A stretch of 64,000 nt of DNA from contig JAHLWZ010000847.1 in NCBI GenBank assembly GCA_020536535.1, positions 1 to 64,000 of the forward strand, written 5' to 3'. Below are positions 38,904 through 64,000 of the stretch, one piece after another. The notes under the pieces are model-generated. The model was given only the letters and a program-made list of their open reading frames with translations, made no database searches and had not been told where the DNA came from. Both the position numbers and the translations under genes were made by a program. The stretch's first letter is position 1. Every line of letters starts with the position of its first letter. Origin of the DNA: Pelomyxa schiedti. Its lineage: Eukaryota; Protista; Evosea.

Positions 38904-41900
38904 TTATTCTGAATTTGACAAAATTTTCTCCAACTCCTGTGCCACAACACTGAAATCTGGGTTTTTTTTTTTTTGTGTTTTTGCAGTGTAAGTGGTGACA
39001 AATAGGAAGAAAAAGAAGAACCTGGCCTTTGCTCAGGGTCCTGTGCCCAGCACGAGGAAATCAAAGTAGACAGTTCCTCAGGAAAGTCAGAGGGGAATTC
39101 TTTGCGCTTGGGAAGAATCAGAAAGTAGAAATTACAAGGGGAATGAGAAACCTTTCCGGAGGTGACGAATTCTATAATTTCTGTGATGGAATAAGGAGTG
39201 CATTTATTGGGAATGTGAAAAAAGAGAAGAGGAAGCATACTCCAGGTTGACGGGAATGAGGAGGGGGGGTACGGGTCAGGATCAACGAGAAGGCAGTAGG
39301 CTAAAAGTGCAAAACTGTGTTTTCAATTTGTGAGTAGAGAGCAAATTTCTAGCCTAAGAGGAGAAACCTGTACACATCAGAGGGCTTACTGTAAGACGCG
39401 TTGTTGAGTACTTCTGGGGCCATGAATGTGGGTGTCCCAACAGCAGCAGTCATGTTGGCACTTACAGTTTTTGAAGCAGACTTTGCCACATCACGGGTGG
39501 TACCAAAATCCGTGATTTTGCCACAAACATCGGAGTCCGGGTCTAAGGATGAGAGTAAGATATTGTCAGGCTTGAGGTCCCTGTGTATGATGCCACTCTA
39601 CAGATCATGGTTAAGTCTGCGGGAATGGAAGGGTAAAGTACTTGGTGCAAGAAGTTCATTCCTCTGGCACAATCGACAAGAATTTTTACTTTTTGCTTTC
39701 CATACAATTTTTTATGTTTCATGACATGCCCTAAACTACCAAGGGTCATGAATTCCTGCAGAATTTTAGTAATGGAAAGAAGGTAGATGAACAACTGTCA
39801 CTATGGAAAGCTGTTTCTTGAAATGTACAGCACCAATGAATTTAACTATCTGGATTGGTTTAGATTAATGGAGAAACTCGACTCGACAACCTGTGGGCAA
39901 TGGAGGCTCTCCATTGTTCGCACCTAGAGAGGGGTTTTGTTGAAGTACAATAGCTTTTAGAATGCTAACCTCACTGCAAAATTCATTGTAAACTTCCATG
40001 GAAATATCAGCACTTTTTAGAACCTGTGCCTGAGGTTTGTGCGGCAATGAAAACATCTTTAAAAAACCTTGACAGCTACATCCTGGCCACGCCATGTGCC
40101 TCTATATACAGTTCCAAACGACCCTGCCACCGTCAATGGATGAACTAAGAAAGAAGGAGAACCTTCGCCAACAGGTGGTTTCTGGAGGGTAATCTCCTCT
40201 GGATCTAAATGCGTCGACATTTTTGTCTCGACAACAAGAGGAATTTCGGTGTGCTGTATATCAATACGGCTATCAAAATTGGTTCCTTTCATTCATTTGA
40301 GAGAATTCCGTTGAGAAAATTCTACTACCACTGGCAGCTGCAAGAACAACAGAGGTGTCAAGCGCGGTTGTGCAGTGTACAACAAACTGGATTTTAATAT
40401 TTACAGTTTCTTTCTAGTTTAGGTGAGTACTTTAAAAATATGAACTACAGTACTTTGCGTAGAGTAGCTGTGCTCGGTTCAATGGCCAGCTTGTATTTAT
40501 AAGACCTGATGGTCAATATATCATAATGTCATATTGTGATTGGGAGGATTACTTTGGCGGGAAGAATTTGTATGTCATTTTTTTCTTCCCTGCATTTACA
40601 AGAGTGAAGGTTTGCGTATAGTCCTTTCCCACTGAGGCTTTGTGCCCGTGGAGTTCGAAGGCGAACTCTGAAATTGAACACTGCCCACAAAAATTAGACG
40701 GGGGCAAAACTCTACAAAACCACATTTAATACGAAGTCAGCTAGCAGGAAATGTCTACAGCAAGTTAGGGGGACGAAGAGTTATGAGTTTCGTACTGAGA
40801 GCCTTCTGTTTCGAATTTTTCAGCAGGAGAATCATCATCGAGGAAGAGAGTGGATAATGCTTGTCCAGAAGGTTTTCTATGTTGTGAAAAAAAGGTTATT
40901 TGATTTTAGACTTTTTATATATACCGCTTTTTCAGGTAAATTGCAGCAAGAATTGCTAAGCCAGCTAAAAGGCCAAAAAGCCCAACAGATATTCCAATAT
41001 ACAAGCCATAATCAATACTATCGATATCTGGTTGGTATCAGTTTTGTCAAGTAAATTTGTTTGCTATACTAAAGTTGAAAGAAAGCTGCTCTGTCAACTC
41101 GGCGCTATTTCCGTTGGTGTCCTTTGTGCAGCCCTCAATTAATGAGACCACACACATCATACTATCTCCCTTATCGTCGAAAATATCAAGGGAGTAGGTC
41201 TTGTTATCCAGATTCCATGGGTGGCAGTTGTTGACAGAACACCCGTCTGAGGTTTCAAAACAAGAGTCTTTTACACCTGTGACCAGTTCATCACATGTAA
41301 AGTTCACTGAAACAGATGGAGAATCTGATTGAGAGGCTCCCCCAGAAAACCAGCAAGTGGGTTTTTTCGTGTCATTGAAGTAAAAAAGGGAATAGGGCTT
41401 GGTATTTCTCACCCCATCCACAACTATCCTAACTGTGAGATTGTACCCCGAGCCTTTTTGCAGGGAGCATGATATGATTGAGTGATTTTGCACCATATTC
41501 ACGGGTTCGCATGCAATGGAATTATCAACTATGACTGTGATGCGGCTAGCAGTTGTCCCAAAGTTTGTACCTAATTTGATGTAACTCTCGAGTTGATGTA
41601 CAGGAAAGTAGCACCTGTTATGGTTGAAACACCACCATCATTTCCAACAGTAGTCATATCTTGAATTTCAGGGGCTGGAAGGTGTAAAATTGGGGTATTT
41701 TGTATTGTAATTCTACCTGCATATGAAAACGTATTCAACGAAGCTGTAAGAGTGTTCTGGGATCTTGGTACATATACGTAGAGGATTGGAGACCCTGTGC
41801 CCTCAGGGGCATGGCATTGGATTTGAGTGTGGTCAACTGTGACTCGGGCACCCTGGCATTCAGAGTTTCCAATCTTTACTGCTACATCGGTACAACTCGG

Positions 41901-44900
41901 ACCGAAATTTGTTCCAGATATGTTAATGAGCATCCCTGTTGTTGATGGTTGATTTGCCCAGGATACCGTAGGAGCTGTTTGTGGAAAATTTTTTAATTCT
42001 AAGTCCATGGAGAATTCATGGAGAAACCTTGGTAAGTGAAAACATTGCTGCTACCTCTAGTAGGTGTTCCAGAGCAAGGAACTTCAACGGATACGTGAAG
42101 AGAAGGGCCAGCACCAACTGGTGCAATGCACTCAATGCGTGTATGATTTATCACCAACGCATTTGTGCAATTGCGTGCTATGGAGCATACATCTATTACT
42201 GTCACACAGGCATCAGTACCAGTGGGACCAAAATTGGAGCCAGAGAGTGTTACAACTGTGCCACCAGATGTTGGGGGAGAAGGATAAACTGAATGAATCT
42301 CTGGGTCTTTTTTTAAATAAAGCTGAGATGTAATTTAGGCAAAGATTTCGCTATACCTTTGTACCAAAAAACTTCTGCACTACCGGAAAGCCTGTGGTCT
42401 GAGTCATTATTATATACAGTTACAGTCACAGATTGGGAGGCACCAACACCCTCGGGAACAATGCACTGGATCTGAGTGTGGTTTTTGATAACTGTTGCAT
42501 TCCGGCAGCTTTTCCCCCCAATTAAGACATCAACAGGAGTTCCCGCCTCACCAAAATTTGAACCAACTATATTCGTGACTATGTTGCCAGTGGTTGGAGT
42601 TGACTGGCCGTAAGAAACCTGTGGTGCTGAAGACAAGTTATTAGTTGCACTCACACGCAAATTATGCATACGGAGATATGAAAAGCTCCATGTATCATTT
42701 TGTGAAAATGTGGCATTCTCAGAAAGTGCAGGGACATGAACAATAAGATCATACCCCTTCCCCACCCCAACTGGTGGATAGCACGTTATACAAGTCTCAG
42801 AAATTACAACGCTACTGCATTCTTGCCCCTTCACCATAACTGAGGCACTTGTACCAAAATTGGTTCCATAAATTTGTGTTGTTGTTGTTCCATCGGTGCT
42901 TGCCATTGTAACAGCAGCTATTTTTGGTGCTTGATGTAATGTTAAACAAGAAATTTCTGTGTGAATGGAAACCTGAATAATGCCAGAAATATGTATTGCT
43001 CATCTGTCCAGAAGAGTTGACCTGAGCTGAATGGAGACCCTCACTATGCCCAACTTTCAGAACGATGCAAGTAGAGTTGTAGATGTAAGAAACTCGAGAA
43101 GTGAAGTTATCCAAAATAACAAACACAGGTCTGGTGCCACCTGGCCCAAAGTTTGATCCCTACACCAGACGTCAAACACTTTCTTGAACTGAGCAGGAAT
43201 ACCCAAATGATGAGCGGAGAGCCTGCTGCTGTTGAGGGTTCATTTGTAAACTCAATTGCAGGACCTTCACAGTGTCAATGCAAGCATTGCGTTATCTCGA
43301 ACTCTCACCTGAATAACTGAAGCCATAGAAACTGGCACATGTCCCATTTGTTTGGGGAACACATACCTCTAATAGAAGTCCTGCACCATACCCGGGTTCA
43401 ACATCACAGGAGATTACAGTATCAGCCACAGTCACAATAGCATTTTTACATAAAACACCGCCAATAGTCACCATGGCAGGTGAATTAGCAGGCCCAAAAT
43501 TGGTGCCACTAATGTACGTTTTACCTCCAGAGGTAGCCACTTTTGAGGAATTAACGATGGTAGGACCTGGAAAAAAGTGAATAAACTTTCAAATGACCAG
43601 TAGCTACCTTCATAGCAGAATACAGGAAAACTTTGAGGGGGGCCAGATAAGTGGACAATTACTGGTAGATGACACCCACAACCAGGAGGTGAAATACAAG
43701 TAACTTCAGTGTGAGCTACAGAAACAAAAGGATCCGTGCAATTCGTGGAGCCAATTTCCACGTACAGGGAAGTGTTAAGAGGTCCAAAATTGGACCCCTG
43801 CAGTTTGGTAAGTCCACCCTCCGTTATAGTTGGAGTTGCACTAAGTACAATGGGTCCTATATAATGATGAGTGCTGTATCGAGTGGAATACATAAAAACC
43901 TGCATAGGAGAAATTGGATGATACTGCCATTTGGGTGTGCGTAGAATTGCATGGAATATACAAAGTTACTTCAATACCGTCACCGTAACCGGCAGGCGGG
44001 CTGCAAGTTATTTTTGTGCCTTCTGTGGACACAAAGGCACTTTCACAAGCGCAGATATCATTCTGGCAAGTTGCGTGGCCATGAGTGCCTGTGCCAGCTA
44101 GAGTAATACAGACACTTGAAGAGATAGGTCCGAAGTTTTCCCCCTGTGTGACCAATGGTGACTTTCCATCAGTGCTCACGCTGCTAAAAGAACGAATAAC
44201 AGGTTCTAGGACAAGGTCACAAAAAAAATAAGAGCGACTCTAAGCTTACTTTGGTAGCTAAAAGTGAACCAATTGCTGACTTGACCATCAATAGAAACTT
44301 GAATGGTCCAGTTACTTCCAACTCCTGGTGGAAACGTGCACATTAACGTGTTGTCACTTGTCCAGTGTGCCATCACCCATGAGTCACCATCAAACGTCGA
44401 AAGTATGGGATAGTGGCCATCAGGTCCAGGTCCAAAATGGATTCCATACTATTGAGTTTAGTGGCAACAAAGTTTATACTATAGTAAGTACCAGTATAAA
44501 TTGACCTCCAGAAGTAGCAACATCATTGATAGCTTTGATCATAGGAGCTAGATTTGATTGTTATTGAGGTGAAAGATTTACCAAAACAACCTGGAAAGGA
44601 GAAGTCACTTGAGAAGACAGGTCTTGATGATCCTCGAGGTACCCACAATGTTATATTCTTATGTGTTCCCACACCGACAGGAGGACTGCAGGTTATTTGC
44701 ATATGTGGTACTACAAGTACTGCAGTTTGGCACTCCTGTCCGTCGATTTCAACATAAATACTGGTTCCTGTTGGCCCAAAATTGGTTCCGTAGATGTTCA
44801 CTTCGTTGGTGCTCTCAGAGTAATTGGAAAAGGTGAGGGCAGGTGCTGGATTTTTTTTTTTTTAAAAAACAAAGACACTTGTTTGCATACCATTATAGGA

Positions 44901-47900
44901 AAAGTCCGAAACAGATGACACAACAGTGTACCCAGGGCAGCCAATTTCCAGCCTAAGAGGATTGTCACATCCAACTCCAGGTGGAACAACAACAAGGGCC
45001 AAACTACTGCTGATGATAGTTGTATTACATGGGAGGTCATCAATGTATGTAAGCCCAACTGTGCCTGATGGACCAAAATTTGTTCCCACAATAGTTGAAT
45101 ATCCACCACTTGTATCAACCGAACTAGAATTCAACAATAGGGGGGCTGAAGACAAGAGTCAGATAAGTTCAAGTCTGGGAGAATGTGACCTGCAAATGAG
45201 AAGTTAGGGAAGTATCCTATCTGAGTCTGAGAGCTATCTATTGGAACAAACAATTCTATCTCAACATCACTTCCTGTGGCAGGTGGGGTATAACAGGTTA
45301 TTTTAGTGTGTGGTATTATGACTGTTGCATTTGTGCACTCAATTTCTGTCTTGAAGCCACAGTCATTACCGAAAACTGACATGAAAATTGCAGTCTGTGT
45401 ATCTTTGGGACCAAAATTGTACCCCAATATAACAGTTAACTCATTCTCCCTGCTCGCGGATGTAATAATTGGAGCTATTTTTCATAAGCATCATGCTCTA
45501 GAAAGGAAAAAAAAAACCTTGGTAGGAAAACAGAAATGGAAGGCTGTGCTGCCCACTAACAGCGATAACGAGAGAGTGATTTCTACCAGAGAGTGCAGGG
45601 AAAAAGCATGATACAGCAGTGCTATTAATGCAGTATGTGATTTGAGGGATGCCATCGACAATACATTGTTCAGGATAAAAAGAACCGACAGCGAAATAGT
45701 GACCCTAATCCTTGTGAATAAATCTATAACCCTCAGGAAATAAGTCTTACAGTGATAACATAGAAGCCACCAGTAGTTGAAATTTGGGGAACATAAGCAA
45801 TCTCAGGTGCTAGGAGGGAATTAGTCTTAATTGGAATTAGGGAGGAGAACCAAAATATGAGAAAACAGGTGAGCTGCCGCATTGTTGTGTGCTTGGTGGA
45901 GCACAAACTTCAACCGTAAGGTTTGCTCCAGCAGAGATATTTGTGTAACAACTGACAGATGTATGATTTACTACAACTGATGCATTTGAGCAATCTGTTC
46001 CATTTATTGTCACAGAAACACGAGAGCCAATGGGCCCAAAGTTGGAGCCTCCAACAGTCACCTTCTTGGGGTTTTCCAGTTCTGTGTCAGACTTGGAATC
46101 AATGTTTGCTGAAAGTACAACTGGCTCTGGTGTTTTGGTTATTTTTGTTTAGAGTATGGTTGGGATGCATACTGTTGTACGAAAAAATAGGATAGATATC
46201 GGATTTAATGCCTGCTACTTGCACCATAACATCAAGCAAAGACCCGTACCCAGGAGGAGATAAGCAAGTAATTTGGATGTGTGATGATTCCAAGTTGGTG
46301 GTTGGGGAGGTGCAGACTCGGTTCTCAATTGTCACAAAAAGTGGTGTTCCTAGAGGTCCAAAGTTGCTTCCATGTATGGTGGTAAAATTACCAGGAGTAT
46401 TTGTTGAGGAGATGTTGAATATAACTGGCTCTAGAAATGTGTCATTGAAAAAAAAAAAAATTGAGAAGGCAGTACTGGAAAAACTGAAGGCTTCGAATAC
46501 CCCAGATTGATTATGAGAACCAAGTGGTAGTATAACTATTACAGTGTTGTTACTGCCAGCCCCAGCGGGGGGGAAACAAGTGATTTGGGTATGTGGTATT
46601 GTAACCGTAGCACTTTTACATTCGCAGTTCACACAAGGTATGTTATCTCCAGTGATTGTCACAAGAAGGTTACTTTCTGTACCAAAGTTGGTGCCATTAA
46701 TAACCACTTTTTCCGATGCATCTGTTTTCACTGAGGATGTACTAGTAATTGATGGCGCTAGATTTCTGTTAGAATGAAAGAGGATCCCGGTAAGGAAAAC
46801 CAGAAAATCTGAATTCCGACATGGCACTAATTTGATCTGCAACATTGACCATTAAAGGCAGGTGCGCACCCACACCAGGGGTGAAGTTGGCCAAAATCTC
46901 TGTGTGGCTCACCCATTGTGAAGGAACCCAGGCAGTATCCACAAGAGTTTTTAAAACGTAACTGCCACCTGGTCCAAAGTTTTGTCCCTGTTTTTCTTGT
47001 TAATTTACCTTCCCAAAAGGATCAAAAAAAAAAAAAAAAACCATTATTATGTGCTGCAGGCTTCCTGCAGTTGGTACAGGATCAGTACCAATAATTACAG
47101 GGGCTGTGATTTTTGAGTGGGGAGTGAAAAATTCAAAAGGGGAAACCTTTGTAGTGAAATATCATTGCCTCTGTTAACTGGTTTCCAACACGGAGTTTGA
47201 CAGGGAGATTTGCACCAACACCGGGAGTAACTTGGCATTGAACTGAAGTGTGAGGCGTCACAAATTGAACGTTGTCACAAGCTTTGCTGTTGACAGAGAG
47301 GAAAATTGACTCAACACTGTCTCCGAAGTTCGTGCCATTGATGGTTATGCCTCCCCCAGTGGTTGAAACATCACTCACTGCCTTTATTGTTGGGGCTTTT
47401 AATAGTTAGACAAATAACTCACAGGGGCCGCCTGACCTGCATAGGAAAAAATGTAAGCCATACCCTGCTGCCAGGTCGATGTGCCATACAGTACTTTGAC
47501 AATAACAAGGAGGGAGGCACCAACACCAGCTTGAGCAGAGCACTTAATTCTGGAATGAGGAATATCTACTTGTGCACTATCACATATGTGACCATCAATA
47601 GTTACTGAAAGTGTAGCCCCTGTGTACCCCATGTTTTCACCATAAATATAAATTTCGCCTCCCTTTGTTGTTGTTGTGCTGGCATTATACAAAATTGGTG
47701 CTGTAAGAGCGTAAGTACTATAACAAAAAAGAAAAACTACAAGGTATAGACATGTTCAGGAATTCAATGGTCTGAGAATGTGTACTCGAGGCAGGAACGG
47801 TCAACTGTAGATAATTGACTGGCTGACTTGGTGTTGCGTAAAGACACTGGATTTCGGTACAGTTCACTGTAACTTGGGGACTATTGCATGACTTGTTTGT

Positions 47901-50900
47901 ATTTGTTGTGACAGTGACTACAGTTCCCTCAGGCCCAAAATTAGTCCCTGTTATCCTTAACTTGACATTCCCGTGCTCATCAGTAAAGGTACCAATAGCC
48001 ACAATTGTGGGTACTGCAATGAATGTAACTTGTAGTATATGGTACCTTTACTTGTACCTGAATATGAGAAGGCATCATCACTCTGCACTGTATAACCCGG
48101 AATGGAAATCCTTACTGGGTATAATCGACCAACTCCAACAGCTGGGACACAGGAGATCACACGGTGTGCAGATGAAACAGAGGAATTTCTGCATGGTGCA
48201 TTCCTTACAGACACATTCACTGGAGTGCCGATGGGGCCAAAGTTTGTACCATACACATGGATTATAGATTCTGTGCAGCAATTGGCTGTACTTACAAGAC
48301 TAATAACAGGTGCTAAACCAAGTTATTACTCAATTTTTATTTCGAAGATAACCTTGGTAAGAGAATCCTTTGTATGTCACAGTTTGGTTTTGCCGAGTTG
48401 CATAGATTCTGAGTTGTAGAGTCAAGTTAACTCCTACTCCTTCTGGAGGTTTGAAGCAAATTCGTGTGTCTGAGGCAGAAGTGGTAGTAGTCCAAGTGGA
48501 GGTGCCAATTTTAACTTCAGAGTGCGTGCCACTAGGCCCCAAATTTGTACCAAAAATGCAAGCTTCTGTTGACTGGTCAGTATTTGCTGAACTCACCGTC
48601 TCAATTTGTGGATCTGCCATATTATGGTTAAAAAGGACACATCTGGGAGAGCACACATTTGTATGAAAAGAGGTACTCCTTTGATTTTTGTCCAGCAACG
48701 TTGACAGAAATTGTGTGATTCAAACCACTACCACTGGGAATGGGGCACTCTACAAAATTTTCGTTGAGCCATGAAGTCTTCACCCAAGAAGAGTTCCCAT
48801 CAATGGAGGCAAGAATAGTTGCGGAGCTGTCAGGTCCAAAGTTAGAACCCTATGCTTGTTCAATCAAGGGTTTTTTATAAGAAGTGGACCTTTATCCTGA
48901 AAGAAGTGCTGCCAGTGGTTGGTACATATTCCATTTGAATAATTTGAGGAGCTATAACATGCACTTTAGCTTTAGTTTGACATATCTATTGTTTGTTAAA
49001 ACCTGCGTAACTGAATACGGAGGCGGAAGCATTTTGACTTCCAAAAACGGGTACATAAACTTCAACAAGTTGGTTTGTTCCTGTTGATACTTGTCACTAT
49101 GACCAGATGAAAAAAAAACTACAAACCAATTCCATCAGGAGTGACACATTTTAGGCTCGTATGAGATAGAACAGTAACATTTACACATTCCCTCCCAGCA
49201 ATGAATGCTGTGACAGAAGTCCCTGGTGGACCAAAATTCATACCAGAAATAGAGGTAAAAGTGTGAGGATCAGAACTTGTTGCGGATAACACAGCGGGAG
49301 CTATTCTTTGTCATCAATTGACCTCCAATGGGGAAGAAATGAAAAAGGATGCACACGGTTATAGGAGAAGATGTAATCACATGTAGTCTGTCCAGTGGAA
49401 GAGCGCGGAATGGTCACACATAACAGCAGCTGTGAACCAGCACCAGGCGGTGCCAAACAGGTAATTTGGTTGTGATTTACAGATTGAGCATTTATGCAAG
49501 TCTTGTTCCCAATAGAAACCGATGCAAGGGTGCCAGGAGGTCCAAAATTAGTGCCACTGATAGTAATTGTAATATTTCCAGTGGTGTTGCACCTTGTTGA
49601 TGTCCCAATTGTTGGCTCTGTAAGAATGATGAAAGGGAAATTTTTTACTAGGGCGTTATCTACCGTCATAGTCTATAACGGAAGTAGCAATCACAGTCCC
49701 TGATGCCAGCTTCACTGTAAGTGTATTGTTTTTGCCTACACCCATGGGCGCACTGCATTGAATTTCTTCTTGGCTGATAACTTCGGCATCAGAGCAGTTG
49801 AGAGCCCCAATGTAAACGGAAACTGATGAATTTTTTGCCCCAAAACCTTTCCCAGTTATGTTGATACGCCCACCACTTGAAGGGGGGCTGGTTGTTTTCA
49901 CAATAATCGGATCTGGCAGAAAGTGAATAAAGCAACAGTTGGTGGCAGGAACACACTATCGTAGGAAAAATAGGTCACAGCACTGTTATTGGTAGAGGGT
50001 AGCACTACAATCACGACTTTGATGTTTTGGCCAACTCCAGGCTTTGGGGTACACGATATTTGTGTATGTTCAACAATTACATGGGCATTTGAACACTCTT
50101 CTCCTCCAATTGTAACATTAATCGGAGTTGAGAAAAACCCAAAATTACGGCCTTGTATGATTGTGTTTGCCTGATAGTTTAAAGGAGATGCTGAGTATGC
50201 TACAGGGCCTATTGCTCATCAGAAAAGAGTTTGATTGATTGAATTATAAAACCAGAAAAGCAGAATTTATCCCATTTAAGGGTTGAACCAGAAATGGAAA
50301 CATTCATAGTCAAGTTAACTCCTATACCCACAGGGAAACATCTAATCTGTGTGTTTGCGACTGTAATTCGGGCATTCCTACAGTCGTTTCCAGCAATAGA
50401 AACTGTGACAGGAGTTCCAATAGCACCGAAATTCTGGCCAGTAATAATAGTTTCCGTACTTCCATCAGTGTCAGCTGAAGTAGTATTCAAGATAGCAGGC
50501 ACTACGTTCTGTAAATCGTGGAACTATTGAGAAGTTTGCGACCTGAAAAGCTAATATGAAATTGGGGACTGGTTAACCCCCCCACAGAAACTGTGATAGT
50601 GTGATTTCCTGAGCCCACCAGTAGGGCTGCCTTCACTGAAGTGTATGACTCCCAGATTGACGGCACTTCCGTCCCATCCAATCGTACAACAAGTGTTGTT
50701 GTAGCAGTGCCGAAATTGTATCCCTACTTTTAGTGGGTAGATGAAAACTTGTCCTGTAATCACACATGAATTGTGCAGTTACTACATCCCTCAGGAAGCA
50801 AGCCATCAATTGAGGAAATATTTGGGCCTAGAACAAATTGTAACATTGGAAATTTAGAGAAGTGTCTGTCTACCTAAATAGGTGAATGTGTTGGAGCAAT

Positions 50901-53268
50901 ATGTGGCAATGCAGACTTCTACAGCTGATCCACCTCCTGGTGGTGCAGAGCATTGCACGAGTGAAGAATTTATCACAGAAGGGTAACCAGCTGAAGCTCC
51001 TCCTATGGTGACCAGGAGCGAACTTGTTTGGCACAAATCTGTTCCTATGAGATAAACCAGTTCTCCTACTGAGTTTGGCTTTGGAATATTACTTGTAATT
51101 GCTGGAGCTATTTTTTATGGTTGGAAAGAGTAAGAATGGAAGAGCGTACAGGTGTATGAAAAAACATTTGCCACGGGACTACTCTGGTCCCCACCTGTAC
51201 GAACTGTCACTTGGACTGGTAAATTTACACCAAGGCCCACTGGGGGATTGCACGTAATCTGATTGTAGTTGTGGACTGAAACATTTGCACAGGGAAATGA
51301 ATTCACAGAAACTTCAATTGATGTGTTGAATTTTCCAAACCACATGCCATTAATTGTAGTGTTACGACTAGAACAAGAATTGGATAGTGTAGCACTCTGG
51401 ATTGTAGGAGCTAGTTGAGGTTAACATTTTTCACAGAAAGGTGCCAGCATACGAGGATAGTTAATATTAGAGCATGCTGTTATATTACTTCCACTGGGAA
51501 TCTCCACACATAAAAGTTGTGACAGACCACAGCCATCAAGTGGAGGTGTGCAAGTAATTGATGTATGAGACTTCGTACATTTAGTACAAGGTGCTCCTGC
51601 TATAGAAACACTCCCTGCTATCGAGCTTGGTCCAAAATTTGCGCCAGTGATGTCTAGCCTTGGTGGATCAGCAATTATCTTGGCTGTTGAAATACTTGGC
51701 GCTTTGCTTTAATGAGTTTGTTTTCCAAAAGGAAAGATAAAAACCTTCATAGTTGAAGATATCTGCATAGCCCCAGTCAGACTGGTTATTACAAGGCCCC
51801 ACACTTACTCGCAACTGGGACCCAGCACCTGGTCGTGGGTAACAGGTTACAGCTTGTTGATCAATTGTCTGGGGTGAATCGCATATAGTGCCATTGATCC
51901 TCACACATAAATTTGTATCTGGTGGACCAAAACCATCACCAGCTATATAAAGCATGGTACCACCTTGTGTTGGAATGGTAGGGGAAACACTTTGTATGGT
52001 TGGGGCAGAAAATCGGTACACTGTTGAGGTGTTACTTGAGACTCCTTTGCATACGATTGACATATTGTATATTACACCTGGACTTCCCTCCTATGGAAAG
52101 TTAATGTAGCACCAAGGGTAAAGGGAATGAACCCCAAGCTGACAGGTCAGCACGTGCTTTCCATCTCCCGTGTTAATACTGCCGCAACTAATGTCTCCAA
52201 CAGACACAGAGTCACAAGGCGGTAGCCAATTCCCACTAATTCTGAGTTGACCTCCACTTGCCTTAGTGGTATTCAAGACAGACAGTATCTCCGGTTCTTC
52301 ATAAATTGGTATGCTATGGAAAAAAGCAAGAACAAACCACAGATTCCTTGATCACACCAACTAGAGTAATTCTGAGCAATAAAGAGGTTGTCCAGTGGCA
52401 CACTGACAAATGTGGTGCTGCCAACCTCAGCCCAAAGTAACCAAATTTCTTCTGAAGTACCTGAGCAGGATGTGGACATGTTCAAGGAAAAGAAGTAATA
52501 TTTATAAGCACTGAAGTAAATAGGAGGAAAAGTAAGAGTTTGGTTTTCCCCCGTGCTGGCACGACAAGGATAAGACACTAATTAAGGAATGAGACCTTTG
52601 TACTTTCACAAAGAAATTCTCACCACTGTCTGGCCCAAGGACATAAGTTCTGTTGTCAGTTACCAGAAGCGCCCGCATGTCAAGGTGGCCTTTCACTTTG
52701 AATTGGAGCGTTTTCAAAGCAGATCCACTTGTGAGCTGCGAGAAGCAAGTAAGCTTTACAGGCATACAGCCGAGGGAAGAAAATACCTTGATTGCCCCAC
52801 GCACTTCATAGCAGTAGAGTGCAGAAGATGTGAGGGGCTGGTCCAGTGGTGTGTGAAAACTGGATTTTTTTTTTTTTTGACACATCAATAAAAAGGAAGA
52901 AAATCCACCGAAAACAAGACAAAAAAAAAAAAAAAAAAAATTGCACACCACCACTCTGACACAGCGCCATCGGCTGGGTTGAAAGTGCACCTTGCGCTGG
53001 TGCAGGCTTGCTCCCGCAGCCCGTACCCATACTGTCCAATGGCCGAGTCGCACGTAAGCGCAGCGGCGCCCCCGGCCAAAACCACAACCATCATCAACAC
53101 CAACACCAACGGCAACGGCAACGACGCCACCACTGACGCTCTCGTGGCCGCCGCCTCCGCCACCAACCGCACCGAGGGCCGCCGCGGCCCACGTGCAGCG
53201 CCGACGAAACCAAAAACGGGCGAGGCGACACCGCCACCTCGCAATTGTGGGTACTTGTGCGCTGCCAT
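38904..53268 (-). CDS. Giant receptor kinase: signal peptide, PA14-like domain, about 35 IPT/TIG repeats, bacterial-Ig-like domain, TM, juxtamembrane Ig-like domain, TKL kinase (Entamoeba TMK-type)
   Basis: Repeated AP.I...T.GG...I.G.NFGP...C....H..I.C..P.G.G exons; TM at about 40935-41005; ETKMSTHLDPEEI..GEGSFGTVYRG..VAVK, HRDLKPDN, DFG, GTPTFMAPE, CWAQDPEQRP. Confidence 0.9.
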
Positions 53269-53550
53269 ACAAAAATTGAGGCTGGGCCTCTGCTGACGAT
53301 ATATTATGTCCCAACGAGTGGTTCGATGGTTTGTTTGTTTGGACTAATTTATTTGGAATTCGGTTGCCCCATCTGAATTGCCAGTTCGTTCCTGCTCTCT
53401 GAAGTTTGGCGCTGAGAGTGGCACTCGCACCATAACCGGAAGTCCGAGTCTTCTGCGCAGAACGTCAGCGACAAAAATAGCCTCGCGTGGCTACAACAGC
53501 AAACCAACGAATTGTTTCGAACAAACAAACAACCAAAATTTGTGGCAACA
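53269..53550. promoter_or_regulatory. Putative bidirectional promoter (282 bp) between the two TIG-array genes
   Basis: Positional only: divergent ATGs at 53268 (-) and 53551 (+). Confidence 0.55.
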
Positions 53551-56500
53551 ATGTACAGTACCGAAACGCGGAGTGGTGGTGGTGTCAGATCTTGCCGTAG
53601 TCGGCCAGATCTTGTTGTCTTATTGCGTGCCGCCATTGTGTGCCTTTGTTGCTGTGCGACGGCGTCACACGCGACGTCATTGGGAGGTCACGGAAAGACC
53701 TTCGCCGAGAGGGGGACATGCACAGAGGGCACCTTTGGCGTTTTTATGCACCAGTGGGACGACGGCAAATACCAGCAGGATTGCCCGCTGGGCGTGGCCA
53801 GTGGGACTTATTGTGACACCGCACCCATCAATTTTACTTTGTCAGACAGTGTGTCACAGTCTGGGTGCATTAAATATTACGGCTACCTCCAGGTGTGGAG
53901 TGCTCCTCTCTTTGTCTGTTGCATTGTCACCCAACACATGTTCCACTTTCTGTAGTTATCATCCGGCCGACCAGAGATCAAACAGCTGAGGCTAGACCTC
54001 TCTACAACAAGTTCTAATGAGGCCACGTTGTATCTTACTACACCTGATGACACTCTCACAGCAGGAGAGAATTATTGTACTCCAACCATAATACAATCGC
54101 ACGACCAACTCTCTAATAGACATGTACAATCATGCCCCTTGCCTCCCTCCTCTTGCTGTTTCCACTAGAACCTTGCCAGCCTATCAATTTGACCCTTACC
54201 ATTTGTACCCCTTTGAAGTCCATGTGATCCAGTGCTCTTCAGATACAGACAGTACTTTTGTGTCACTGCAATGGGCAGGTGAGGATGGTGTCTACCAAGT
54301 TATTCCTGCATCAGAGTTCATCTTTGTGGATTCCTCAGAACCTGTTATATGTGAAGCTGATGTATGTGGTAAGGACACTCTTCCCATCTTACTCTCTTTC
54401 CCACTTTTATCTCTGCTTATTTAGAACCACAATTGACAAGTTTTGAGTCCAATGCTACTACTGCTGGTGATAGTTTGGTTTATATTGAGGGTTCATGGCT
54501 TGATGAATGCACAGATGTCTTTATAGGGGGAGAACCCTGTGAAATTACAAGTGTTTCTTACCTCATCCCAGGCTATATTACATGCAAACCCCCGGTAGTA
54601 ATTTGGACTCCAATTACCTATGTCTCATTTAAAGAAGGAAGGGTCCCTTGGCTTGAGTTATGATTTATGGGTTGTATGCAGAGGTGTCACTAGCAGCGAA
54701 CTCACTGGTTTCACTTATCAATGTTTCTTGCCCACTCTAATATTTTGTACTCTTTTGTTAAAAGTCACTAATGCAATGTAGCACCAACAATTATCTCTGC
54801 GACAGAGGCCTTCACAGATGGGTCAACTCAAACAGTAATAAGTGGTACCAGTTTTGGTCCACAGGGTACTCTTGTTACTGTTACAATTGATGGGGAACCA
54901 TGTACTTCTGCTAGTGTTACAACACCACACACAGTCATTTCTTGCTATCCTCCTCCAGGAGTTGGTGCTGACCACGAAGTACAAGTTAACTTTCTCACTT
55001 CAGGCGAAGTAGCAAAGGAATATGTGTTCTCCTACACGAGTAATTCTCAAACTCTTTGAACGACCCTGAGGCACTCACTCCCCCAAAGGTCCATCTATAT
55101 CTGAAGTTGTTTCCACTATAGAATCTGGAAAGCAAGCCTTAACTGTAACTGGCACAAACTTTGGGAATGAATTATCCTCCATTTCTGTGGGAGTAGATGG
55201 ATATATTTGTCAGAATGTGTCGATCCTTTTTGCTCACAAATCAGTTCTTTGTTTCCCTGACTCACATGCTGTCATTGGAAAAAATCACAAAGCATCAATC
55301 ACTGTTGAATATCAAACCAGCCCAGATTTTTCCTTTGACTTTCCAGGTGAAGTTCAATTTCCAATGTTTTTTTTTATTAACTTGGCATTTTTAAGCCCCT
55401 ACAATTATGTCATGCTCCAATACACCAACGACAGGGGGGGGAATTTCAATATCTGGAAAGTTTTTTGGCGCAGCTGGGGGAGCTGCTACCAGTCCTTGGG
55501 TTTATGATATTGTTGTTCTCGGTGTTGGTGAAATTAACTGTACTATACCACCTGGGGCAGGGCAAAAACTCCCTCTGCAAGTAACAGTTGGAGGACAAGA
55601 TAGCCCAATAGAATATATATACTATTTCCAGGGTATCGCTACTTTGCATGGAGTTCACTCCTGACAAACTCAAGGTCCAAAGGTTGTATCTGCTACACCT
55701 ACATCTACAACGGGAGGCTACACAACAATCGTTGGCACCAATTTTGGACCAAGTGGCACTTCTATATCTGTTACTATCGACAACAAAGAATGCAAGGAAG
55801 TGGTTATGAATCACACTGTAATTCAATGCAAGACTCCAGAAGGAGTCGGAAAAAATTTGACAGTTACTGTCACATCACCAACTGGGGTCAATGCCCAAAC
55901 TGCATATGCACAAGCCTTCTCATATCAAAGTTTTTTCCTTCCAGTTAACTTAAAATTCACTTCATCAGGTCCCTTGATTACCGGAGTTATTACTGGCAAT
56001 TCCTATATCACCCTCATTGTATTACATCCTCTAATCTAACTGCACTCATGGTAATGTTAGGGGCAAAATTTTGCACCAAGTGGTTACACAGGAATTACAT
56101 GCTCCAATGATGATGGAAGCACGTGGACATTTGGGGAAGCTGTAAATACAACCACAATGAAGTGTTACAGCTCTGGAAACAAAGTAATGGTAATGATTGG
56201 AGGACAGAAAAGTAACTCGAAAATCTTCACACAAAGTAAATCTAGTTGTAATCTGTGCACACTGTTATTTACTCCCACCCCAACGACAAAACAAAACAGC
56301 TCCCACAATAGACTTAGTTACTAGTGTTGAGACTGCAGGAGGCACTGTTAACATTATTGGTCAATGCTTTGGGTCAACTTCAGTTACTGTCTACATTGAC
56401 AATAAAAAATGTGAAGTGGCACAAATTATCACCCCTAATTCGCAGATAACTTGCACAGCCCCTGCAGGTGCTGGCAAGAACTTAGATGTTCTTGTAATGT

Positions 56501-59500
56501 TCTCTTCACCACTTGTAAATGTATCTTTCAGGGGATTTTCCTATAACTGTATTGGAACACATCTTCTTTTCACAACTTATTTCCTTAGCCCCACGGATTT
56601 TTTCTACTACTTCTGTGGATACTATTGGAGGTTATGTTTATATTAAAGGAGACAACTTTGGCCCAGCTGGAACAACTGTAAATGTCACGATTGGCAACAA
56701 AATGTGCTCTAATGCAAGTGTTGTTACCGCTCACACAATAATTGGCTGTTTGATGCCTCCCTCTGTTGGGGGCTCCCTTGATGTTGGGGTGAATATTCCT
56801 ATTGTCCCTTCACATTCACAGGAAGCACATGCACCAATCTTCTACTTCAATGGTAATGAGCTTCTTTTTTTGTTTCTCTGATCTCATCTCCAACAGATCC
56901 TGAAATAACGGCAGTTTCCTCCGCAGACACAGATGGACACTCGAGAGTTACTATTTACGGGAAAAATTTTGGTCCTGCAAGTGCCAGTGGTGTGAAGTTT
57001 TCAATTTTTGTGTGTCTGGATAGCAGTACCTGCTCCGAGTGTCTCAATACCTCAGTTGTTGATCACAACCATCTACAGTGTTTTCCTCCTGTAGGAGTAG
57101 GAAAGGAGTATAAATTGCTCTTGAACCTCACAACAGTAAATGGAGGTTGGGTTCAGTCTGCAGAATATGATCTTTTTGATTATAAAGGTATTCTTTCATT
57201 TTAAAGATGTGTACATTTAGGAAAATAGATCCGCTCATTCATAATGTGTCTCACCCAAGCACTACCGGAGGAAACATCACCATATATGGGGAAAACTTTG
57301 GCCCGACTGGCACTCCAATTGCAATTCATATTGGGAGTGTGCAATGTGAAGGAGCACATATTAGCCTATCACACTTTGAAGCTAGTTGCGAAATATCTGA
57401 GGGTATTGGAGGGCCAAAAGAGGTTTATTTTGAGATTCTTCCTACAACCGAACATGCAACTAGTGTTTCTTCGAATTCATTTTTTTACAAGGGTAAGTTG
57501 ACGGATTTTGTTTTGTAAGCTAATCGTTGCCCATTAGCTCCAATTATTCTGTCAGCAAAAACAGCAAGTGGTGGAGGACAAACGGAAATAAGTGGGAGTA
57601 ATTTTGGTCCAACTGATACTCCCATTACAGTAACAATTGGGGGACAAACTTGTTTTTCTCCTATGGTCAAGACTGCCCATTCAAAAATTGAGTGTACTGT
57701 TCCCACTGGTGCCGGAGTTAAGAAGGTTATCACTGTTACAGTCCCTTCAGGCTCAACAACACAGTTCTCAAGTGCCGCTCTATTCAACTACACAGGTCTA
57801 TTCAAGATACAGTTGGTTCCATTAACTTTTTTTTCAGCCCCCAAGATTTCAACAGTGCCACTTGTGCCTACACTTGGGGGACTTATCCATATTCAAGTAT
57901 TGACTCTGTCTTTTTTTTTTTTTGAATTAAAACACGAAGGGGTCCGACCTTGGAGCGCCATTCAACTCCATTTCTGTGTTTATCGACAGTACAAAGTCCT
58001 ATTATGCAGCAATTATCAATAGTAGTACTATTCTAGCCGGGGTTCCTCCTGGTTCAGGGACAAATCATTGGGTTTATGTGTGCATTGAATCAATATGCAC
58101 ATCTGCCGCTCTTCTTAGTTTTCAATGTAATCTCTCCACCTTGTAAGTACTCGATTATCCAAGTTAAGTTTCCCTTTAGCGCCAGTGTTCACATCTTCTA
58201 CTGGCGCCTCGACTGATGGTTCTGCCTTCACCACACTCCATGGATCCAACTTCGGTCCGATTGGCACTGTGGTGAGTGTCTATTTCCCATCGAAGGGTTC
58301 CTACTGCTTGAATGCAACAGTATCTGTGCAGCACACACAAATTAAGTGCCGTCCTCCTCCTGGTGTTGGCTTGGACAATACTATATTAATCACTGTTGGA
58401 AACACTGGAAGTGCATTATCTACAGTTAGCAATGGGTTCTCATATGATCGTAAGCAAAGAATTTTTTTTTTTGGCACCCAACCTTCACTCAGCTCCAGCA
58501 CTGTCATTTGCAACTCCAGCTGATACTGTTGGGGGTATAATTACTATTTGTGGGTCCAACTTTGGTGACCTTGGAACCAATGTGACCGTGATAATTGGCC
58601 TAGCTGAATGTGAAGGAGCCAAAGTTTCACTTGCACATAAGCAAATCCAGTGCTCAGCACCAGCAGGGGTTGGCAAGAACTTGAAGGTTACACTTAATGT
58701 TCCTCAGACTGGTTATTTATCTACTTATTCCAACATCTTTTCTTATAATCGTATGTATTTTTTTCCTATGACTGAAAGTTGACATCGAAAAAGCCCCAGT
58801 TGTTACCTCTGCTTCTGAGGTTAAAAACGGGATGTACAACATCTCAATTTTTGGGAAAAACTTTGGAACTTCCATCAGTGTTGCCGTAATGATATCCGGG
58901 AAACCCTGCACAGTGACAAGTGTCTCTCAAACGGAAATCAAATGCATTGCACCCCCTGGCTCAGGGCCTTGCCGACCAGTGATCGTCACAGTACCTGCTG
59001 GTGTAAATGCCCAGTCCAGTATGGAAGCTTATGTGCTAAATTATACTGGTAGCACCATAGATGTAGTTTTTCACTGATTTGTTATCAAAGGTCCTGGATT
59101 TTCTAATGCCAGCACCACCACAACTGAAGGTGGTCTGACAACTATATATGGACAGAACCTGGGGGCTGTCGGTGACAGTTTGATAGTGAAAATTGACAAT
59201 AAGTTGTGTGCCAATGCCACCGTTACGAAGCTCAACTCAGAAGTTCAATGCGTTGCTCCACAAGGAGCTGGCAAAAACTTGATTGTGCATGCGACACTAG
59301 TTGATGGGACATTCCTCACAGAGGCCCCTGTATTCTCTTATATGCGTATGCATAGATTGCGTTCTTCGTTTCTGTTGGCTGATTTTCTTCAGCACCAACA
59401 GTGTCATCTATCTCGCATTCCGACACAATTGGGGAGGAAATCTCTCTAGTAGGAACGAATTTCGGTCCTGTGGGAACCAACATTAGTGTAATGATTGACC

Positions 59501-62500
59501 ATTTGGGGTGCTCAGAGGCATATATCACAAAGAGTCATCAAGAAATTACTTGTGTGGCCCCCGCTGGTGCAGGTATAGCTTCGGAATTACTTGTAATTTA
59601 CAAACTGACACAAAAAGGTTCAAATATCCCAACAACTGTGTGCATCCCCACTACTAATCCACAGTGTATTCATCTTTCTTTCTCTTACAATGGTTCGTTT
59701 CCCATCGGCTTGTCTTTTCTTTGAAAAAACTACAAAAAAAAAAAGCTCCTTCAATCAGTACTGTCACACCTGTTTCCACTGCTGGCGGGAATGTTACTAT
59801 AACTGTATTCCATCTCTTGATAGATCAGCGTGTTTGTTTATAGTAGTTTAGGGAAACAATTTTGGACCTGGTGGTTCATATCTTGTGGATACTTCAACAG
59901 ATGGAACTACATGGCTTCACTCAGAGCAAATTAGCCACACTATTGTAAAGGCGTTAGTGGCACCTGGCTGTGGTAAAGGCCGGAACATCACAATTCGTGT
60001 TGTGGATCAAACAAGTGTGCCTGCCCATTTCAACTATTCAGGTATGCCATCCCCAACTCTTGTGCCTTTCTGACTCCTAGAAAGCTCCTACAATATTATC
60101 TACTTCCTCTCCAAGCACGAGAGGGGGTATTCTGACACTAACAGGCATAAACTTTGGCATTTCTGGCACTCATGTAATTGTTAATATTGGAAAGCAACCT
60201 TGTTCGACAGCAACGGTTGCAGTTCCCCACACGGAGATAACATGCACAGCACCCTCCGGCACTGGCGTTGTACAAGGAACTCTATTAGTTCCAGATGACC
60301 TGCGTTTCAGTCAGAGTACTTCTTTCCAAATGACATATGCAGGTATTTCAAGATTTGAGTACTCCCTTTCTAATTTTGATAATTTAGTGCCTGAGATCTA
60401 CGTCATGACTCCCACACACACGCAAGGCGGTACAACTGAAATATATGGAGATAACTTTGGCCCTGTTGGAACTCCAGTTTCAGTGGCCATCAATGGAGCA
60501 TCTTGTTTGAATCCTAAAGTCGAAGTGAACCACACCAAGATTACGTGTACTGTGCAGCCTGGGTGTGGTACAACTTTGTCTGTTAAGATAAATGTTTCTT
60601 CCATATATTCTTTTACATCAATATTCTCCTTTGCAGGTTTCTCATTTCCTACCTCCTGTCTTCTCACCTTCCTGTAGGACCTTCAATAATAAATGCCACT
60701 GCAGTTAATACCAGTGGAACAGAGGAAACCCTTATAACAGGCATAAACTTTGGGCCGCAGAATGACTCTGTTTCTGTGTTGATTGGGGGAGTTAACTGTA
60801 CGGAGGCACAAGTTATTAGACCTCATCAGACAGTGTCCTGTTACCCACCACCTGGTGTTGGAGCCAATCTATCAGTTGAATTGTGCGTCCACTGCAACGG
60901 TTTGCAATGTACCTCAGCACCTGTATTTCGTTACAGAGGTAAATCACGGTCCAAACTGTATGCTTACTTGCACTTAGAACCTGTCATAAAATATGTCCCC
61001 CCTGTGCCAACACAGGGGCAATGGATAACAGTGCTGGTTTGTTTTCTTTGGCTTTCTTTTTTCTTTTTATGAGGTTGTGCTAGGGTGATTTCTTTGGCAC
61101 CATAAACAGTATTGTAACATGTGCCACAAACCCCAGTGGACCAACACCAGCACAGTGGCTAAATAATACAGCTCTTAACTGCTCTATTGGTGAAGGACTT
61201 GGGACTGGTCTTGTTGCGGTTTGTATTGCAGGGCAATGCAGTAACTCATTCATTTTCCATTATCAAGGCGAGTACAACCGTAAAGTATTTACTCTAATTA
61301 TCATAAAAGCTCCTACCATTGATAGCATTCCATCTCCCAGTACCAATGACTCACTGCTGACAATTTTTGGAAACAACTTTGGACCCGATAATACAATCCC
61401 ATCAGTTTTCATATGCAAGGATGAATTGTGTACTTTGGCTTGTAAGAATGCAACTGTGTCCGTCAAGCACACCGTCATAACATGTCAGCTTCCTGTCAGT
61501 GTAGGGGCAGGTTATATTGTGAACGTTACCGTTGGTGGGCTTTATGGACTTGGGACCTTTTCGTTTAAAAGTACCTGGCTAATCTATTTTCCTGTCGTTT
61601 TCTAATTAATTTACCCCAGGCCCACTTATTCATAGCGCCACCTCTACCAATACCACTGGCGGTACTACAACCATTTTAGGAGAAAATTTTGGCCCAGAAA
61701 ACACAACAATCATGGTGCTCTTGAACGCAGTTTCTTGTTTACACCCTGTTGTTCATTCACACAATCATATTACCTGTGAAGTACAACCAGGGTATGGTGC
61801 ACTTCTAAACGTTGTGGTTATTGCACCCCTTGGTGAATATCATCAGAATGGGTCTGCTCCAGTTTTTTGCTATAACGGTAATTCCACGATATGAATTCCT
61901 AAGAGCTGATTTTTTTAGCTCCTTCTATTGTTTCCATGACTCCCACCCCCACCAGTGGGGGTATCGCCACCGTTTACGGAAACAATTTTGGACCCTCTGG
62001 GAGTCCCGCCATTGTTACTGTATCAAACTTTTCATGCAGCAACGTAACAGTTATAAATCACACTCAACTGAAGTGCAATGTCCCTCCTGGTTGTGGGGGT
62101 ACTAATACTATGGTTGTGTGCCTCCCTGATACCTCGAACTGTGGCTCGCCATCCCTTTTTCTTTACATAAGTATTGTCTTGTATCTTTTATTTTAAGAAT
62201 CATGTATTTAGGTCCTACAATTGTCAATATGTCTCTCCCCCCAACTAATGGAAGTTGCTCAATCCAAATTACTGTACACCACTTTTCTATATACAATGTT
62301 TACACAATTAGGGATCGAATTTTGGGTTGCCTCTTTGTACTGTTTCTGCCATAGTGGATGGATACAGCCAATCAGCAACCATTTTATCACATACCACGCT
62401 TTCTGTATGTGTTCCTGTTGGAAGTGGCTCAGGACATCTTATTCAAGTAGTTGTTCAGAACCTAGGGAGCAATTTGCTTACTTTTTCATATCATGGTTTA

Positions 62501-64000
62501 CAACTTACTTTCCCCAAACTTACTGAGTGTTATTTCAGTTCCAGAGATAAACCGAATCGAGTCTGTGAAGACAAGTGGTGGCAAGTTGACAATTTTTGGT
62601 ACGAACTTCGGACCTCTTGGGACACCTGTACTTGTTTCTTTGGAGGGGCTGGGAGTGCAGTGCTCACATACACCAAAATGCATTTGTTCCAACGCATCTA
62701 TTTCTATTGCCCACACCGAGATATCTTGTTCTGCACCTCCTGGTGTTGGAGGGGACCACACCATTAATATTACCATCCCCGCAAATAATTATGGATTGAG
62801 CACCAGTAGCAATATTTTTGCGTATTCAAGTTTGTCTCTATGCCTTTACCTTTTTCCTAATCTCTCATAGGCCCTATTGTGACATCAACCTCACCAACAA
62901 GTACTACAGGTGGCATAACTGTGATTGAAGGGGACAACTTTGGCTTGTCCAATACCACTATCGCCGTCTATTTATTTGTACTGGGAAACTACTCCCGGTG
63001 TACTGATCTTTCAGTCTCCATTCCCCATTTGGAACTGCAGTGCAGGATGCCAGAGGGCTATGGAGAAAATTTGCCACTAAAAATTACTATTCTAGAAGGA
63101 TACCCAGGCTCTCAATCTGTGGATGCATCATTTTCCTACCAAGGTTTTTTGCCACCTCTTTCAATTTTTTTCTCATATATTTCCAGCGCCAGTTGTTTTA
63201 AGTTCAACACAAACCAATACAACTGGAGGCATCGTTCAGATAACTGGGGTGAACTTTGGTCCCCTGGCACTGACAGACATCACAGTGACAATTGCTGGAA
63301 CAAAGTGCAAGAATCCAAATGTCTCCGTTGCTCACACACAAGTCACTTGCACGGCCGATAAAGGAGCAGGGGCACAGCAATTGATTGAAGTTACAGTACC
63401 TGCAGGAAGTAATCAACAAGGGAGGGCCTATGTTTTTAGCTATTTCCGTGCGTTTTGCTTTCCACAGTTCGAACTCCCCATGTAATGTTACATAGGTCCC
63501 CAAATTACCTATGTGCCACCAGTACCTACTACAGCCAGCAAGCCTGTCCACCTCATTCAGGTCTCTATTCTCAATCTAGTGTCTCCTTACTAAGCCTGTA
63601 GGGGGTGAACTTTTCTCCTTTTAATAATATTTCTGCACTCGTTGTTATTGAGGGAATTACTACGGTTGCTACATGGGATAGTGCAACTAGTATCTATGCC
63701 TCATTCCCTGAAGGAGTGGGTGCCAATCTTTCACTTACAGTCACTGTGGCCAATCAAACAAGCGACAACTTCCTATGGAATTACCAACGTATGACTTCAT
63801 TTTTTCTCCCTTTTCTCATCCCAGACAGCACCTGTTATTGAGTTTGTTAGTGAAGCCCCTGATGAGAACCAAGTTGGAATAACTATTGGTGGTAGTGCCT
63901 TTGGCAAGCAAGGTGACAACATCTTTGTCTTTCTAGATTCAGTGCCTTCTGTTGCATGCAGTAATGTGGAAGTTACTATCCCTGATGTACTACTGTGGTG
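53551..64000 (+). CDS. Giant surface protein: signal peptide, PA14-like domain, at least 31 IPT/TIG repeats; runs off the window end; paralogue of 38904-53268
   Basis: PA14-like YPFEVHVIQ..VSLQWAGEDGVYQVIPASEFIF, then roughly one TIG repeat per exon with GxNFGP motifs. Confidence 0.88.

Follow-up and report, generated by a model that had tools for sequence, protein, structure and literature searches.

The stretch of DNA analysed here (hereafter, the window) comprises bases 1-64000 of the 77,297-base contig JAHLWZ010000847.1 of Pelomyxa schiedti (assembly GCA_020536535.1), and its sequence is eukaryotic and intron-rich. It carries two giant genes, here called gene A and gene B, that start head to head on opposite strands and encode proteins with long arrays of IPT/TIG domains, an immunoglobulin (Ig)-like fold. 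On balance, we think it probable that A and B are intact giant single-pass receptor kinases, each an autonomous receptor, that their head-to-head layout stems from an old inverted duplication, and that the family to which they belong evolves by modules. Within the data searched, this receptor family has so far been seen only in P. schiedti, and, judging from sequence and domain comparisons, no other organism in those data was found to unite a PA14-type tip with about 35 TIG domains and a kinase of the tyrosine kinase-like (TKL) group.

Two intact giant receptor kinase genes

The first in-frame ATGs of the two genes lie at 53268 (minus strand, A) and 53551 (plus strand, B), leaving 282 bp between them, exactly as a preliminary description of the window had reported. 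The features of both genes are listed below with their positions on the contig.

38904 to 53268, minus strand: gene A, whole span, encoding signal peptide, tip, about 35 TIG domains, juxtamembrane domain, transmembrane helix, MSP-like domain and kinase
52951 to 53268, minus strand: exon 1 of A, with the start codon at 53268, a long N-region, a hydrophobic signal segment and the start of the tip
52787 to 52858, 52625 to 52735 and 52339 to 52578, minus strand: tip exons 2 to 4 of A, the remainder of the PA14-like module
41359 to 52297, minus strand: stalk of A, about 35 IPT/TIG domains, about one per exon
40940 to 41360, minus strand: membrane-proximal cysteine-containing domain of A and its single transmembrane helix (about 40940 to 41010), then KKR
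38904 to 40683, minus strand: cytoplasmic part of A, with an MSP/ASH-like Ig domain (about 40333 to 40683) and the exons of the TKL-type kinase (about 38913 to 40290)
53269 to 53550, no strand: spacer of 282 bp between the start codons of A and B, inside a CpG-rich island; candidate bidirectional promoter
53551 to 53892, 53956 to 54076 and 54120 to 54368, plus strand: exons 1 to 3 of B, encoding signal peptide and PA14-like tip
54426 to 64000, plus strand, continuing to 65334 on the contig: stalk of B, IPT/TIG domains, crossing the end of the window
Beyond the window, plus strand: after a juxtamembrane domain, the transmembrane helix of B (about 65.7 kb), its MSP-like domain (about 66.0 to 66.3 kb) and its kinase (about 66.5 to 67.8 kb)

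At the N-terminus of both proteins, a hydrophobic signal-type segment is followed by a cysteine-rich module of about 175 amino acids (aa) encoded over three to four exons, here called the tip. The introns are of the GT-AG type with a median length of 43-45 nt (43 nt in A; about 66 introns in the GenBank model of B), and the open frame is kept across about 70 exons in each gene. The first intron of A (52860-52945) contains two long homopolymer runs. Words sampled from the junction region are present at 96-99% in two DNA runs, which may be the source data of the assembly itself.

The database models of both genes are incomplete. The GenBank model of A, KAH3746092.1, represents the N-terminal 2180 aa only; it begins at an inner ATG (53094) and stops after the 23rd TIG match, and A is split over at least two GenBank models. 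The GenBank model of B starts at an inner Met and so has no signal peptide; several TIG exons are included only in part, and apparent introns of 88-226 nt arise from this among introns of about 44 nt. The NCBI names given to two P. schiedti tip models are "protein serine/threonine kinase" and "zymogen granule membrane glycoprotein" (KAH3765385.1 and KAH3746092.1, respectively).

A TIG profile built from the repeats in the window gave 35 matches in A (41359-52015) and 34 in B (54772-65325), all of them full length except those split by an intron. After merging the intron-split domains and adding the weakly scoring first domain after the tip, the count comes to about 35 TIG domains per gene. Pfam IPT/TIG (PF01833) was matched by 20 stretches of the B model (E 1e-151) and by 13 stretches of the N-terminal A model (E 7e-112), as well as by single exons of both genes, and whole-protein Pfam scans of the two models returned TIG and kinase families only. 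The repeats of A and B are colinear and 33-35% identical. The preliminary description had spoken of colinear but highly diverged paralogues, each with a signal peptide and more than 30 TIG repeats, and this description holds for both genes. Every fourth to seventh domain of the stalk is a variant TIG in which the first 24 profile positions, with a conserved Trp, are encoded on a separate short exon (A 42959-50723, B 56061-65334). The positions of these variants correspond in A, B and the two other tip-bearing genes described below (C218 and C788), which suggests that the stalk may hold an old super-repeat.

Each protein has one membrane span. Between the membrane and the kinase, both contain a stretch that matches MSP/ASH-type Ig domains weakly, under the Pfam cut-offs. 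The kinases of A and B match PF07714 with E-values of 1e-58 to 1e-59 (about 1e-56 to 1e-59 when PF00069 is considered alongside it), and the catalytic motifs are intact in both, namely the G-loop, VAVK, HRDLKxxN (HRDLKPDN in A), DFG and APE. B, at 1e-59 against PF07714, has an intact kinase and no pseudokinase. We place both kinases in the TKL group because their nearest solved relatives are CTR1, Roco4, TNNI3K and MLK.

Gene B extends about 3.8 kb past the end of the window. In this outer part, another five TIG domains come before a cysteine-containing domain close to the membrane; a transmembrane helix with basic residues after it, a small Ig-like domain and the full kinase complete the protein. 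The preliminary description had noted an intact kinase at the end of at least one gene of the pair and had predicted that B continues for about 4 kb with a few more repeats, a membrane span and perhaps a kinase or pseudokinase; the contig bears out this prediction, and both genes have intact kinases.

Predicted fold of the tips

The tips of A and B are only 25% identical, and in an exon-level search they found no match in each other (E ≤ 1). A feature search of the ESM Atlas with the tip part of exon 1 of B likewise gave no usable match. We generated predicted structures for both tips with AlphaFold, each model resting on an alignment of three tips only. Both models are sandwiches of ten to eleven strands, with a predicted local distance difference test (pLDDT) score of 67 and a predicted template modeling (pTM) score of 0.71 for the A tip and a pLDDT of 63 for the B tip. 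When the two models were compared to known structures with Foldseek, PA14 lectin domains led the matches for both (Marinomonas MpPA14, the PA14 domain of an RTX adhesin, Cea1A, Epa and anthrax PA), at probabilities of 0.99-1.00, E-values of 2-3e-3 and template modeling (TM) scores of 0.35-0.41, a level below that which excludes a generic sandwich. VIA-align gave Z scores of 5.2-7.6 over 107-132 residues, and its top rows were clostridial anti-sigma-factor domain proteins, which we take to be PA14-type RsgI sensor domains, a beta-galactosidase domain and residues 16-156 of anthrax PA. At the position of the Ca-binding motif of PA14 domains (DcisD), placed through an alignment to the PA14 consensus and not by superposition, B alone among the four tips has a DD pair; A has DN and C218 has NT.

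From these models, a PA14-type fold is likely for the tips of both A and B. Their function would be lectin-like.

The receptor family in P. schiedti

Pfam TIG matches place TIG arrays on at least 16 contigs genome-wide, a count that is a lower bound, with 150 of the 328 candidates scored, and only the contig of A and B carries them on both strands. Seven other TIG loci were inspected together with 3.3-9.3 kb of upstream sequence, and all seven are solitary, with one array of 11-34 TIG domains on one strand and nothing TIG-like opposite. Eight further TIG loci were judged from the strand of their Pfam matches alone. A and B are the sole head-to-head pair found in the family, and since both belong to one gene family, their adjacency is not a matter of chance.

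Two other tip-bearing genes were found in exon-level tip searches, C218 and C788. The C218 tip resembles the B tip (30% identity) and the C788 tip resembles the A tip (34% identity). No partner gene or remnant of one was found within 3.3 kb upstream of C218 or within 9.3 kb upstream of C788, and the upstream sides of both genes face the ends of their contigs. In the kinase of C788 (about 5500-6150 on its contig), a local tblastn search with the C218 protein did not find the stretch with the conserved VAxK lysine, and the exons with the G-loop, HRDLK, DFG and APE are present; the gap may mean that a small exon was missed or that the kinase is degenerate.

When a profile built on the C-terminal half of the tip was compared with 1.84 billion representative proteins, it retrieved only three real matches, all from P. 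schiedti: the paralogue on contig C218 (P0001, 3801 aa), gene B (P0002, 3509 aa) and the N-terminal half of gene A (P0003, 2180 aa). Giant proteins combining TIG domains with a kinase, sought by word-based candidate selection within length windows, were also found only in P. schiedti. Among these TIG receptor kinases are the products of two solitary 29-TIG genes, C171 and C790, which have the same stalk, MSP-like domain and kinase as A and B. The database models of C171 and C790 were not matched by the tip profile; the first 700 aa of the C790 model have no Pfam match, the C171 model opens with TIG domains, and no tip-like reading frame stood out upstream of the first TIG domain in either gene.

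A further P. schiedti TIG protein of 1552 aa (P0031), encoded on another contig of 106 kb, matches the TgrO1-like Ig domain PF24612, and its N-terminus has a match resembling Reelin subrepeat B that falls just under the Pfam cut-off. By its shared domain, P0031 is a direct family link between the TIG proteins of P. schiedti and the tgr genes of Dictyostelium.

Mosaic history of the tip-bearing genes

The stalks and cytoplasmic parts of the four tip-bearing genes tell one history and their N-termini another. Along the TIG repeats, colinear chain scores are highest for A with C218 (1881) and B with C788 (1967), the other four pairs scoring 1255-1397, and this pairing is the most identical one in 26 of 33 repeat columns. 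Four-taxon likelihood favours ((A,C218),(B,C788)) for repeats 6-19, for repeats 20-33 and for the cytoplasmic part (delta lnL 74, 77 and 28, respectively), and both alternatives are rejected in these regions by the approximately unbiased (AU) test (p 1e-8 to 0.002). The N-terminal block, taken from the C-terminal tip half through the second TIG domain (for C788, three in-frame exon stretches concatenated by coordinates), favours ((A,C788),(B,C218)) instead; here the AU test rejects both the stalk topology (p = 0.0135) and the third one (p = 0.024). Identities follow the same division: in the tip half, A is 36.8% identical to C788 and 22.4% to C218, whereas in the stalk it is 39-40% identical to C218 and 33-35% to C788. 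Reciprocal exon-level matches agree with the tip pairing of A with C788 and B with C218. The C218 tip is not merely fast-evolving, because it is the best match of the B tip.

The two sets of trees point to an N-terminal module of about the first 330 residues that was reciprocally exchanged relative to the stalk-kinase body, with a switch point somewhere within TIG repeats 2-5. The tip together with the first two TIG domains has a history separate from that of the body. Each of the four genes A, B, C218 and C788 represents a different one of the four possible pairings of two tip types with two body types. Since the terminal branches of the tip trees are similar in length to those of the stalk trees, the exchange is about as old as the duplications. 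The most economical history would be one duplication of a two-gene unit together with one central inversion in the head-to-head pair. When the tip-less 29-TIG kinases C171 and C790 were included in a tree of the cytoplasmic part with six taxa, B and C788 clustered with them (support 100), apart from A and C218. PA14-type tips are therefore carried by two body lineages, neither of which is the closest relative of the other.

A CpG island shared by both gene starts

Exon 1 of A, the spacer and exon 1 of B lie together under a single CpG-rich island (about 52.9-53.8 kb, some 0.9 kb long) with a CpG observed/expected ratio of about 1.0-1.2. The gene bodies of A and B are depleted of CpG (observed/expected 0.16-0.49 per kb), with GpC at 0.7-1.0. 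Other likely gene starts in the window have similar islands, one of them at 36-37 kb, before the inositol-3-phosphate synthase gene. In 1-kb bins over the whole contig, GC-rich islands with a CpG ratio of about 1 lie at likely gene starts at 13, 16-18, 21, 26, 36, 53 and 69 kb. This distribution of CpG suggests that gene bodies in Pelomyxa may carry cytosine methylation.

Given the 282-bp spacer and the one island over both starts, A and B probably share one bidirectional promoter, and because this promoter is probably shared, co-expression of the two genes is likely. The preliminary description had proposed a co-regulated pair acting as a heterodimer or as ligand and receptor at a recognition locus. 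The spacer and the common island fit the co-regulated part of that proposal, and the recognition part found no support.

Weighing the possible explanations

Several observations weigh against the reading of A and B as autonomous, lectin-tipped receptor kinases of a modular family. Pfam PA14 (PF07691) was matched neither by the tips exon by exon (E ≤ 10) nor by joined database models of three tips (E ≤ 1), and Pfam returned no other meaningful family for the tip exons and the joined database tips either. The tip profile, compared with the sequences of the PDB, retrieved no PA14 chain and chance matches only. The structural matches of the tips are modest, with a TM score of about 0.4 and Z below 8, and come from medium-confidence models built on three sequences. 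The earlier designation of the tips as PA14-like thus has the structural ranking on its side, with PA14 domains first in Foldseek for both models, and the Pfam searches against it. The family census is incomplete, and the support for the N-terminal topology, drawn from four deeply diverged sequences, is significant without being overwhelming. Lastly, two single-cell RNA runs contain 8% and 6% of the words sampled from 51000-56500, and these are assignable to neither gene.

Three other ways of explaining the locus can be set beside this reading. That A and/or B are decaying duplicates, or artefacts of assembly or annotation with no function, would account for the way GenBank splits A into at least two models, begins the B model too late to include the signal peptide and skips parts of some of its repeats, and the assembly was made from amplified single cells of one culture, as described in the genome paper (PMC8887013). 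We consider this highly improbable, since about 70 exons per gene stay in open frame through GT-AG introns of about 43-45 nt, the TIG matches are full length apart from the intron-split ones, the catalytic motifs are intact in both kinases, and the junction words recur in the two DNA runs at the high rates given above. A dedicated system like tgrB1/tgrC1 of Dictyostelium, in which A and B are co-expressed and their tips bind each other in trans or in cis to discriminate self, prey or endosymbionts, was the proposal of the preliminary description. It draws on the divergent orientation, the 282-bp spacer and the common CpG island; on the TIG ectodomains shared with Tgr proteins and the TgrO1-like PF24612 domain of P0031; on the fact that the A and B tips belong to two different tip types; and on the resemblance of the A/B/C218/C788 mosaic to the recombination mosaics of tgr genes (PMC12745789). 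Pairing, however, is no property of the family: both strands carry arrays at only one of the at least 16 TIG-array contigs, and all seven examined loci are solitary. The closest tip relatives, C788 for A and C218 for B, work without a neighbour. Moreover, A and B each have their own kinase, and for this reason neither looks like a mere ligand. It had been proposed that other head-to-head pairs be sought and that random orientation of family members elsewhere would speak against a recognition locus; no other pair was found, and the solitary arrangement of the other loci is largely what such randomness would look like. We know of no aggregative or kin-structured life stage in Pelomyxa. A recognition system of this kind therefore seems to us improbable.

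A recombination cassette is unlikely too, although less so. Here the inverted TIG arrays would have recombined at least once, and possibly recurrently, flipping the tip-promoter-tip segment and swapping tips between bodies. The reciprocal exchange of N-terminal modules against stalk-kinase bodies among A, B, C218 and C788 is what such an event would leave behind, as are the breakpoints in the first few TIG repeats of both genes, and the four sister relations, being of similar depth, fit a single duplication of a two-gene unit with a single central inversion. Against this, no nucleotide-level inverted repeat between A and B was found beyond one 20-nt match, so that homologous inversion is not ongoing and present-day flipping has no basis. 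In addition, C218 and C788 are on other contigs, and for this reason the mosaic is accounted for just as well by an ectopic crossover or by two gene conversions. The breakpoints are also poorly resolved: in A the switch follows TIG 1, and in B it may fall anywhere from the tip to repeat 5. A stronger form of the idea takes the head-to-head layout itself to be a device that is kept because flipping makes new tip-body combinations, with the mosaic as its footprint; we regard this as improbable, to the same degree as the recognition system. If it were true, the flipping layout would be a eukaryotic counterpart, at the level of receptors, of bacterial invertible tip-swapping cassettes. The pair is best seen as one locus of the family with a probable shared promoter, rather than as a demonstrated recognition system, and the reading of A and B as autonomous receptor kinases remains the one that we favour.

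Comparison with known systems

TgrB1 and TgrC1 of Dictyostelium are, like A and B, amoebozoan single-pass surface proteins made of IPT/TIG domains, and their genes are paired and diverge from one promoter region. The Tgr proteins, however, are much shorter and have neither a kinase nor a PA14-type tip, whereas A and B each have a complete signalling module. In Dictyostelium the pairing defines the functional locus, whereas in the P. schiedti family it is the exception. Pfam scans of the A and B models gave no match to PF24612, the TgrO1-like Ig family. The tgr genes themselves have been described as recombination mosaics (PMC12745789).

The animal receptors MET and RON and the plexins share with A and B a ligand-binding head on an IPT/TIG stalk, one transmembrane span and a cytoplasmic signalling domain, which in MET and RON is a kinase. 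They have three to four IPT domains as opposed to about 35, and a Sema-PSI head in place of a PA14-like one; Pfam matched neither Sema nor PSI in the A and B tips or in the whole database proteins. In addition, the kinase of A and B, TKL-type with HRDLKxxN, falls outside the receptor tyrosine kinase group to which the animal enzymes belong.

Fibrocystin (PKHD1) and PKHD1L1 are giant single-pass membrane proteins of about 4000 aa with many IPT/TIG domains and a PA14 domain. Unlike A and B, fibrocystin contains G8 and PbH1 regions, its short tail lacks a kinase, and its PA14 domain is found inside the array rather than at the tip. G8 and PbH1 had no match in whole-protein Pfam scans of A and B.

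In the yeast Flo, Epa and Cea1 adhesins and in the bacterial RTX adhesin MpIBP, a PA14 lectin domain is held far out on a long repetitive stalk, as we propose for A and B. These adhesins have no signalling domain, and their stalks are Ser/Thr-rich or made of BIg repeats. The design of A and B would thus follow the logic of the PA14-tipped adhesins of yeast and bacteria with a signalling end added. Within P. schiedti itself, the cytoplasmic part of B and C788 is closer to that of the tip-less kinases C171 and C790 than to that of A and C218.

Neighbouring sequence

Directly past the 3' end of A, on the minus strand at 35064-36493, lies a gene that resembles myo-inositol-3-phosphate synthase in a by-eye reading of its translation. 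On the contig beyond B there is a very GC-rich, low-complexity stretch at 69000-69700, and a gene at 75400-77000 has a translation with B-box/zinc-finger-like and coiled-coil-like parts.

Proposed role and meaning

Taken together, the predicted features of A and B outline a receptor in which a PA14-type, lectin-like beta-sandwich would cap a rod built from about 35 Ig-like TIG domains. From the size of the domains, this rod would be of the order of 100 nm or more in length. Binding at the tip would be relayed through one membrane helix to the cytoplasmic MSP-like domain and the TKL-group kinase. Such a receptor would most likely work at a distance from the membrane, sensing particles, prey or microbes, or adhering to them, by their glycans or other surface molecules. 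The product of each gene would be a receptor in its own right; mutual binding of A and B is conceivable but found no support here.

Pelomyxa is a large anaerobic amoeba that houses several prokaryotic endosymbionts and feeds by engulfment. For an amoeba that engulfs its food and harbours endosymbionts, adhesion, uptake or sorting by way of glycan or surface sensing would be a natural guess. In the part of the Pelomyxa genome paper available to us, IPT is not mentioned and none of the three mentions of "kinase" concerns a receptor kinase (PMC8887013). The rod kinases with lectin-type tips would provide concrete receptor candidates for how Pelomyxa senses and sorts what touches it. They would also constitute a second amoebozoan case, after the tgr genes of Dictyostelium, of TIG-based surface genes that exchange modules.

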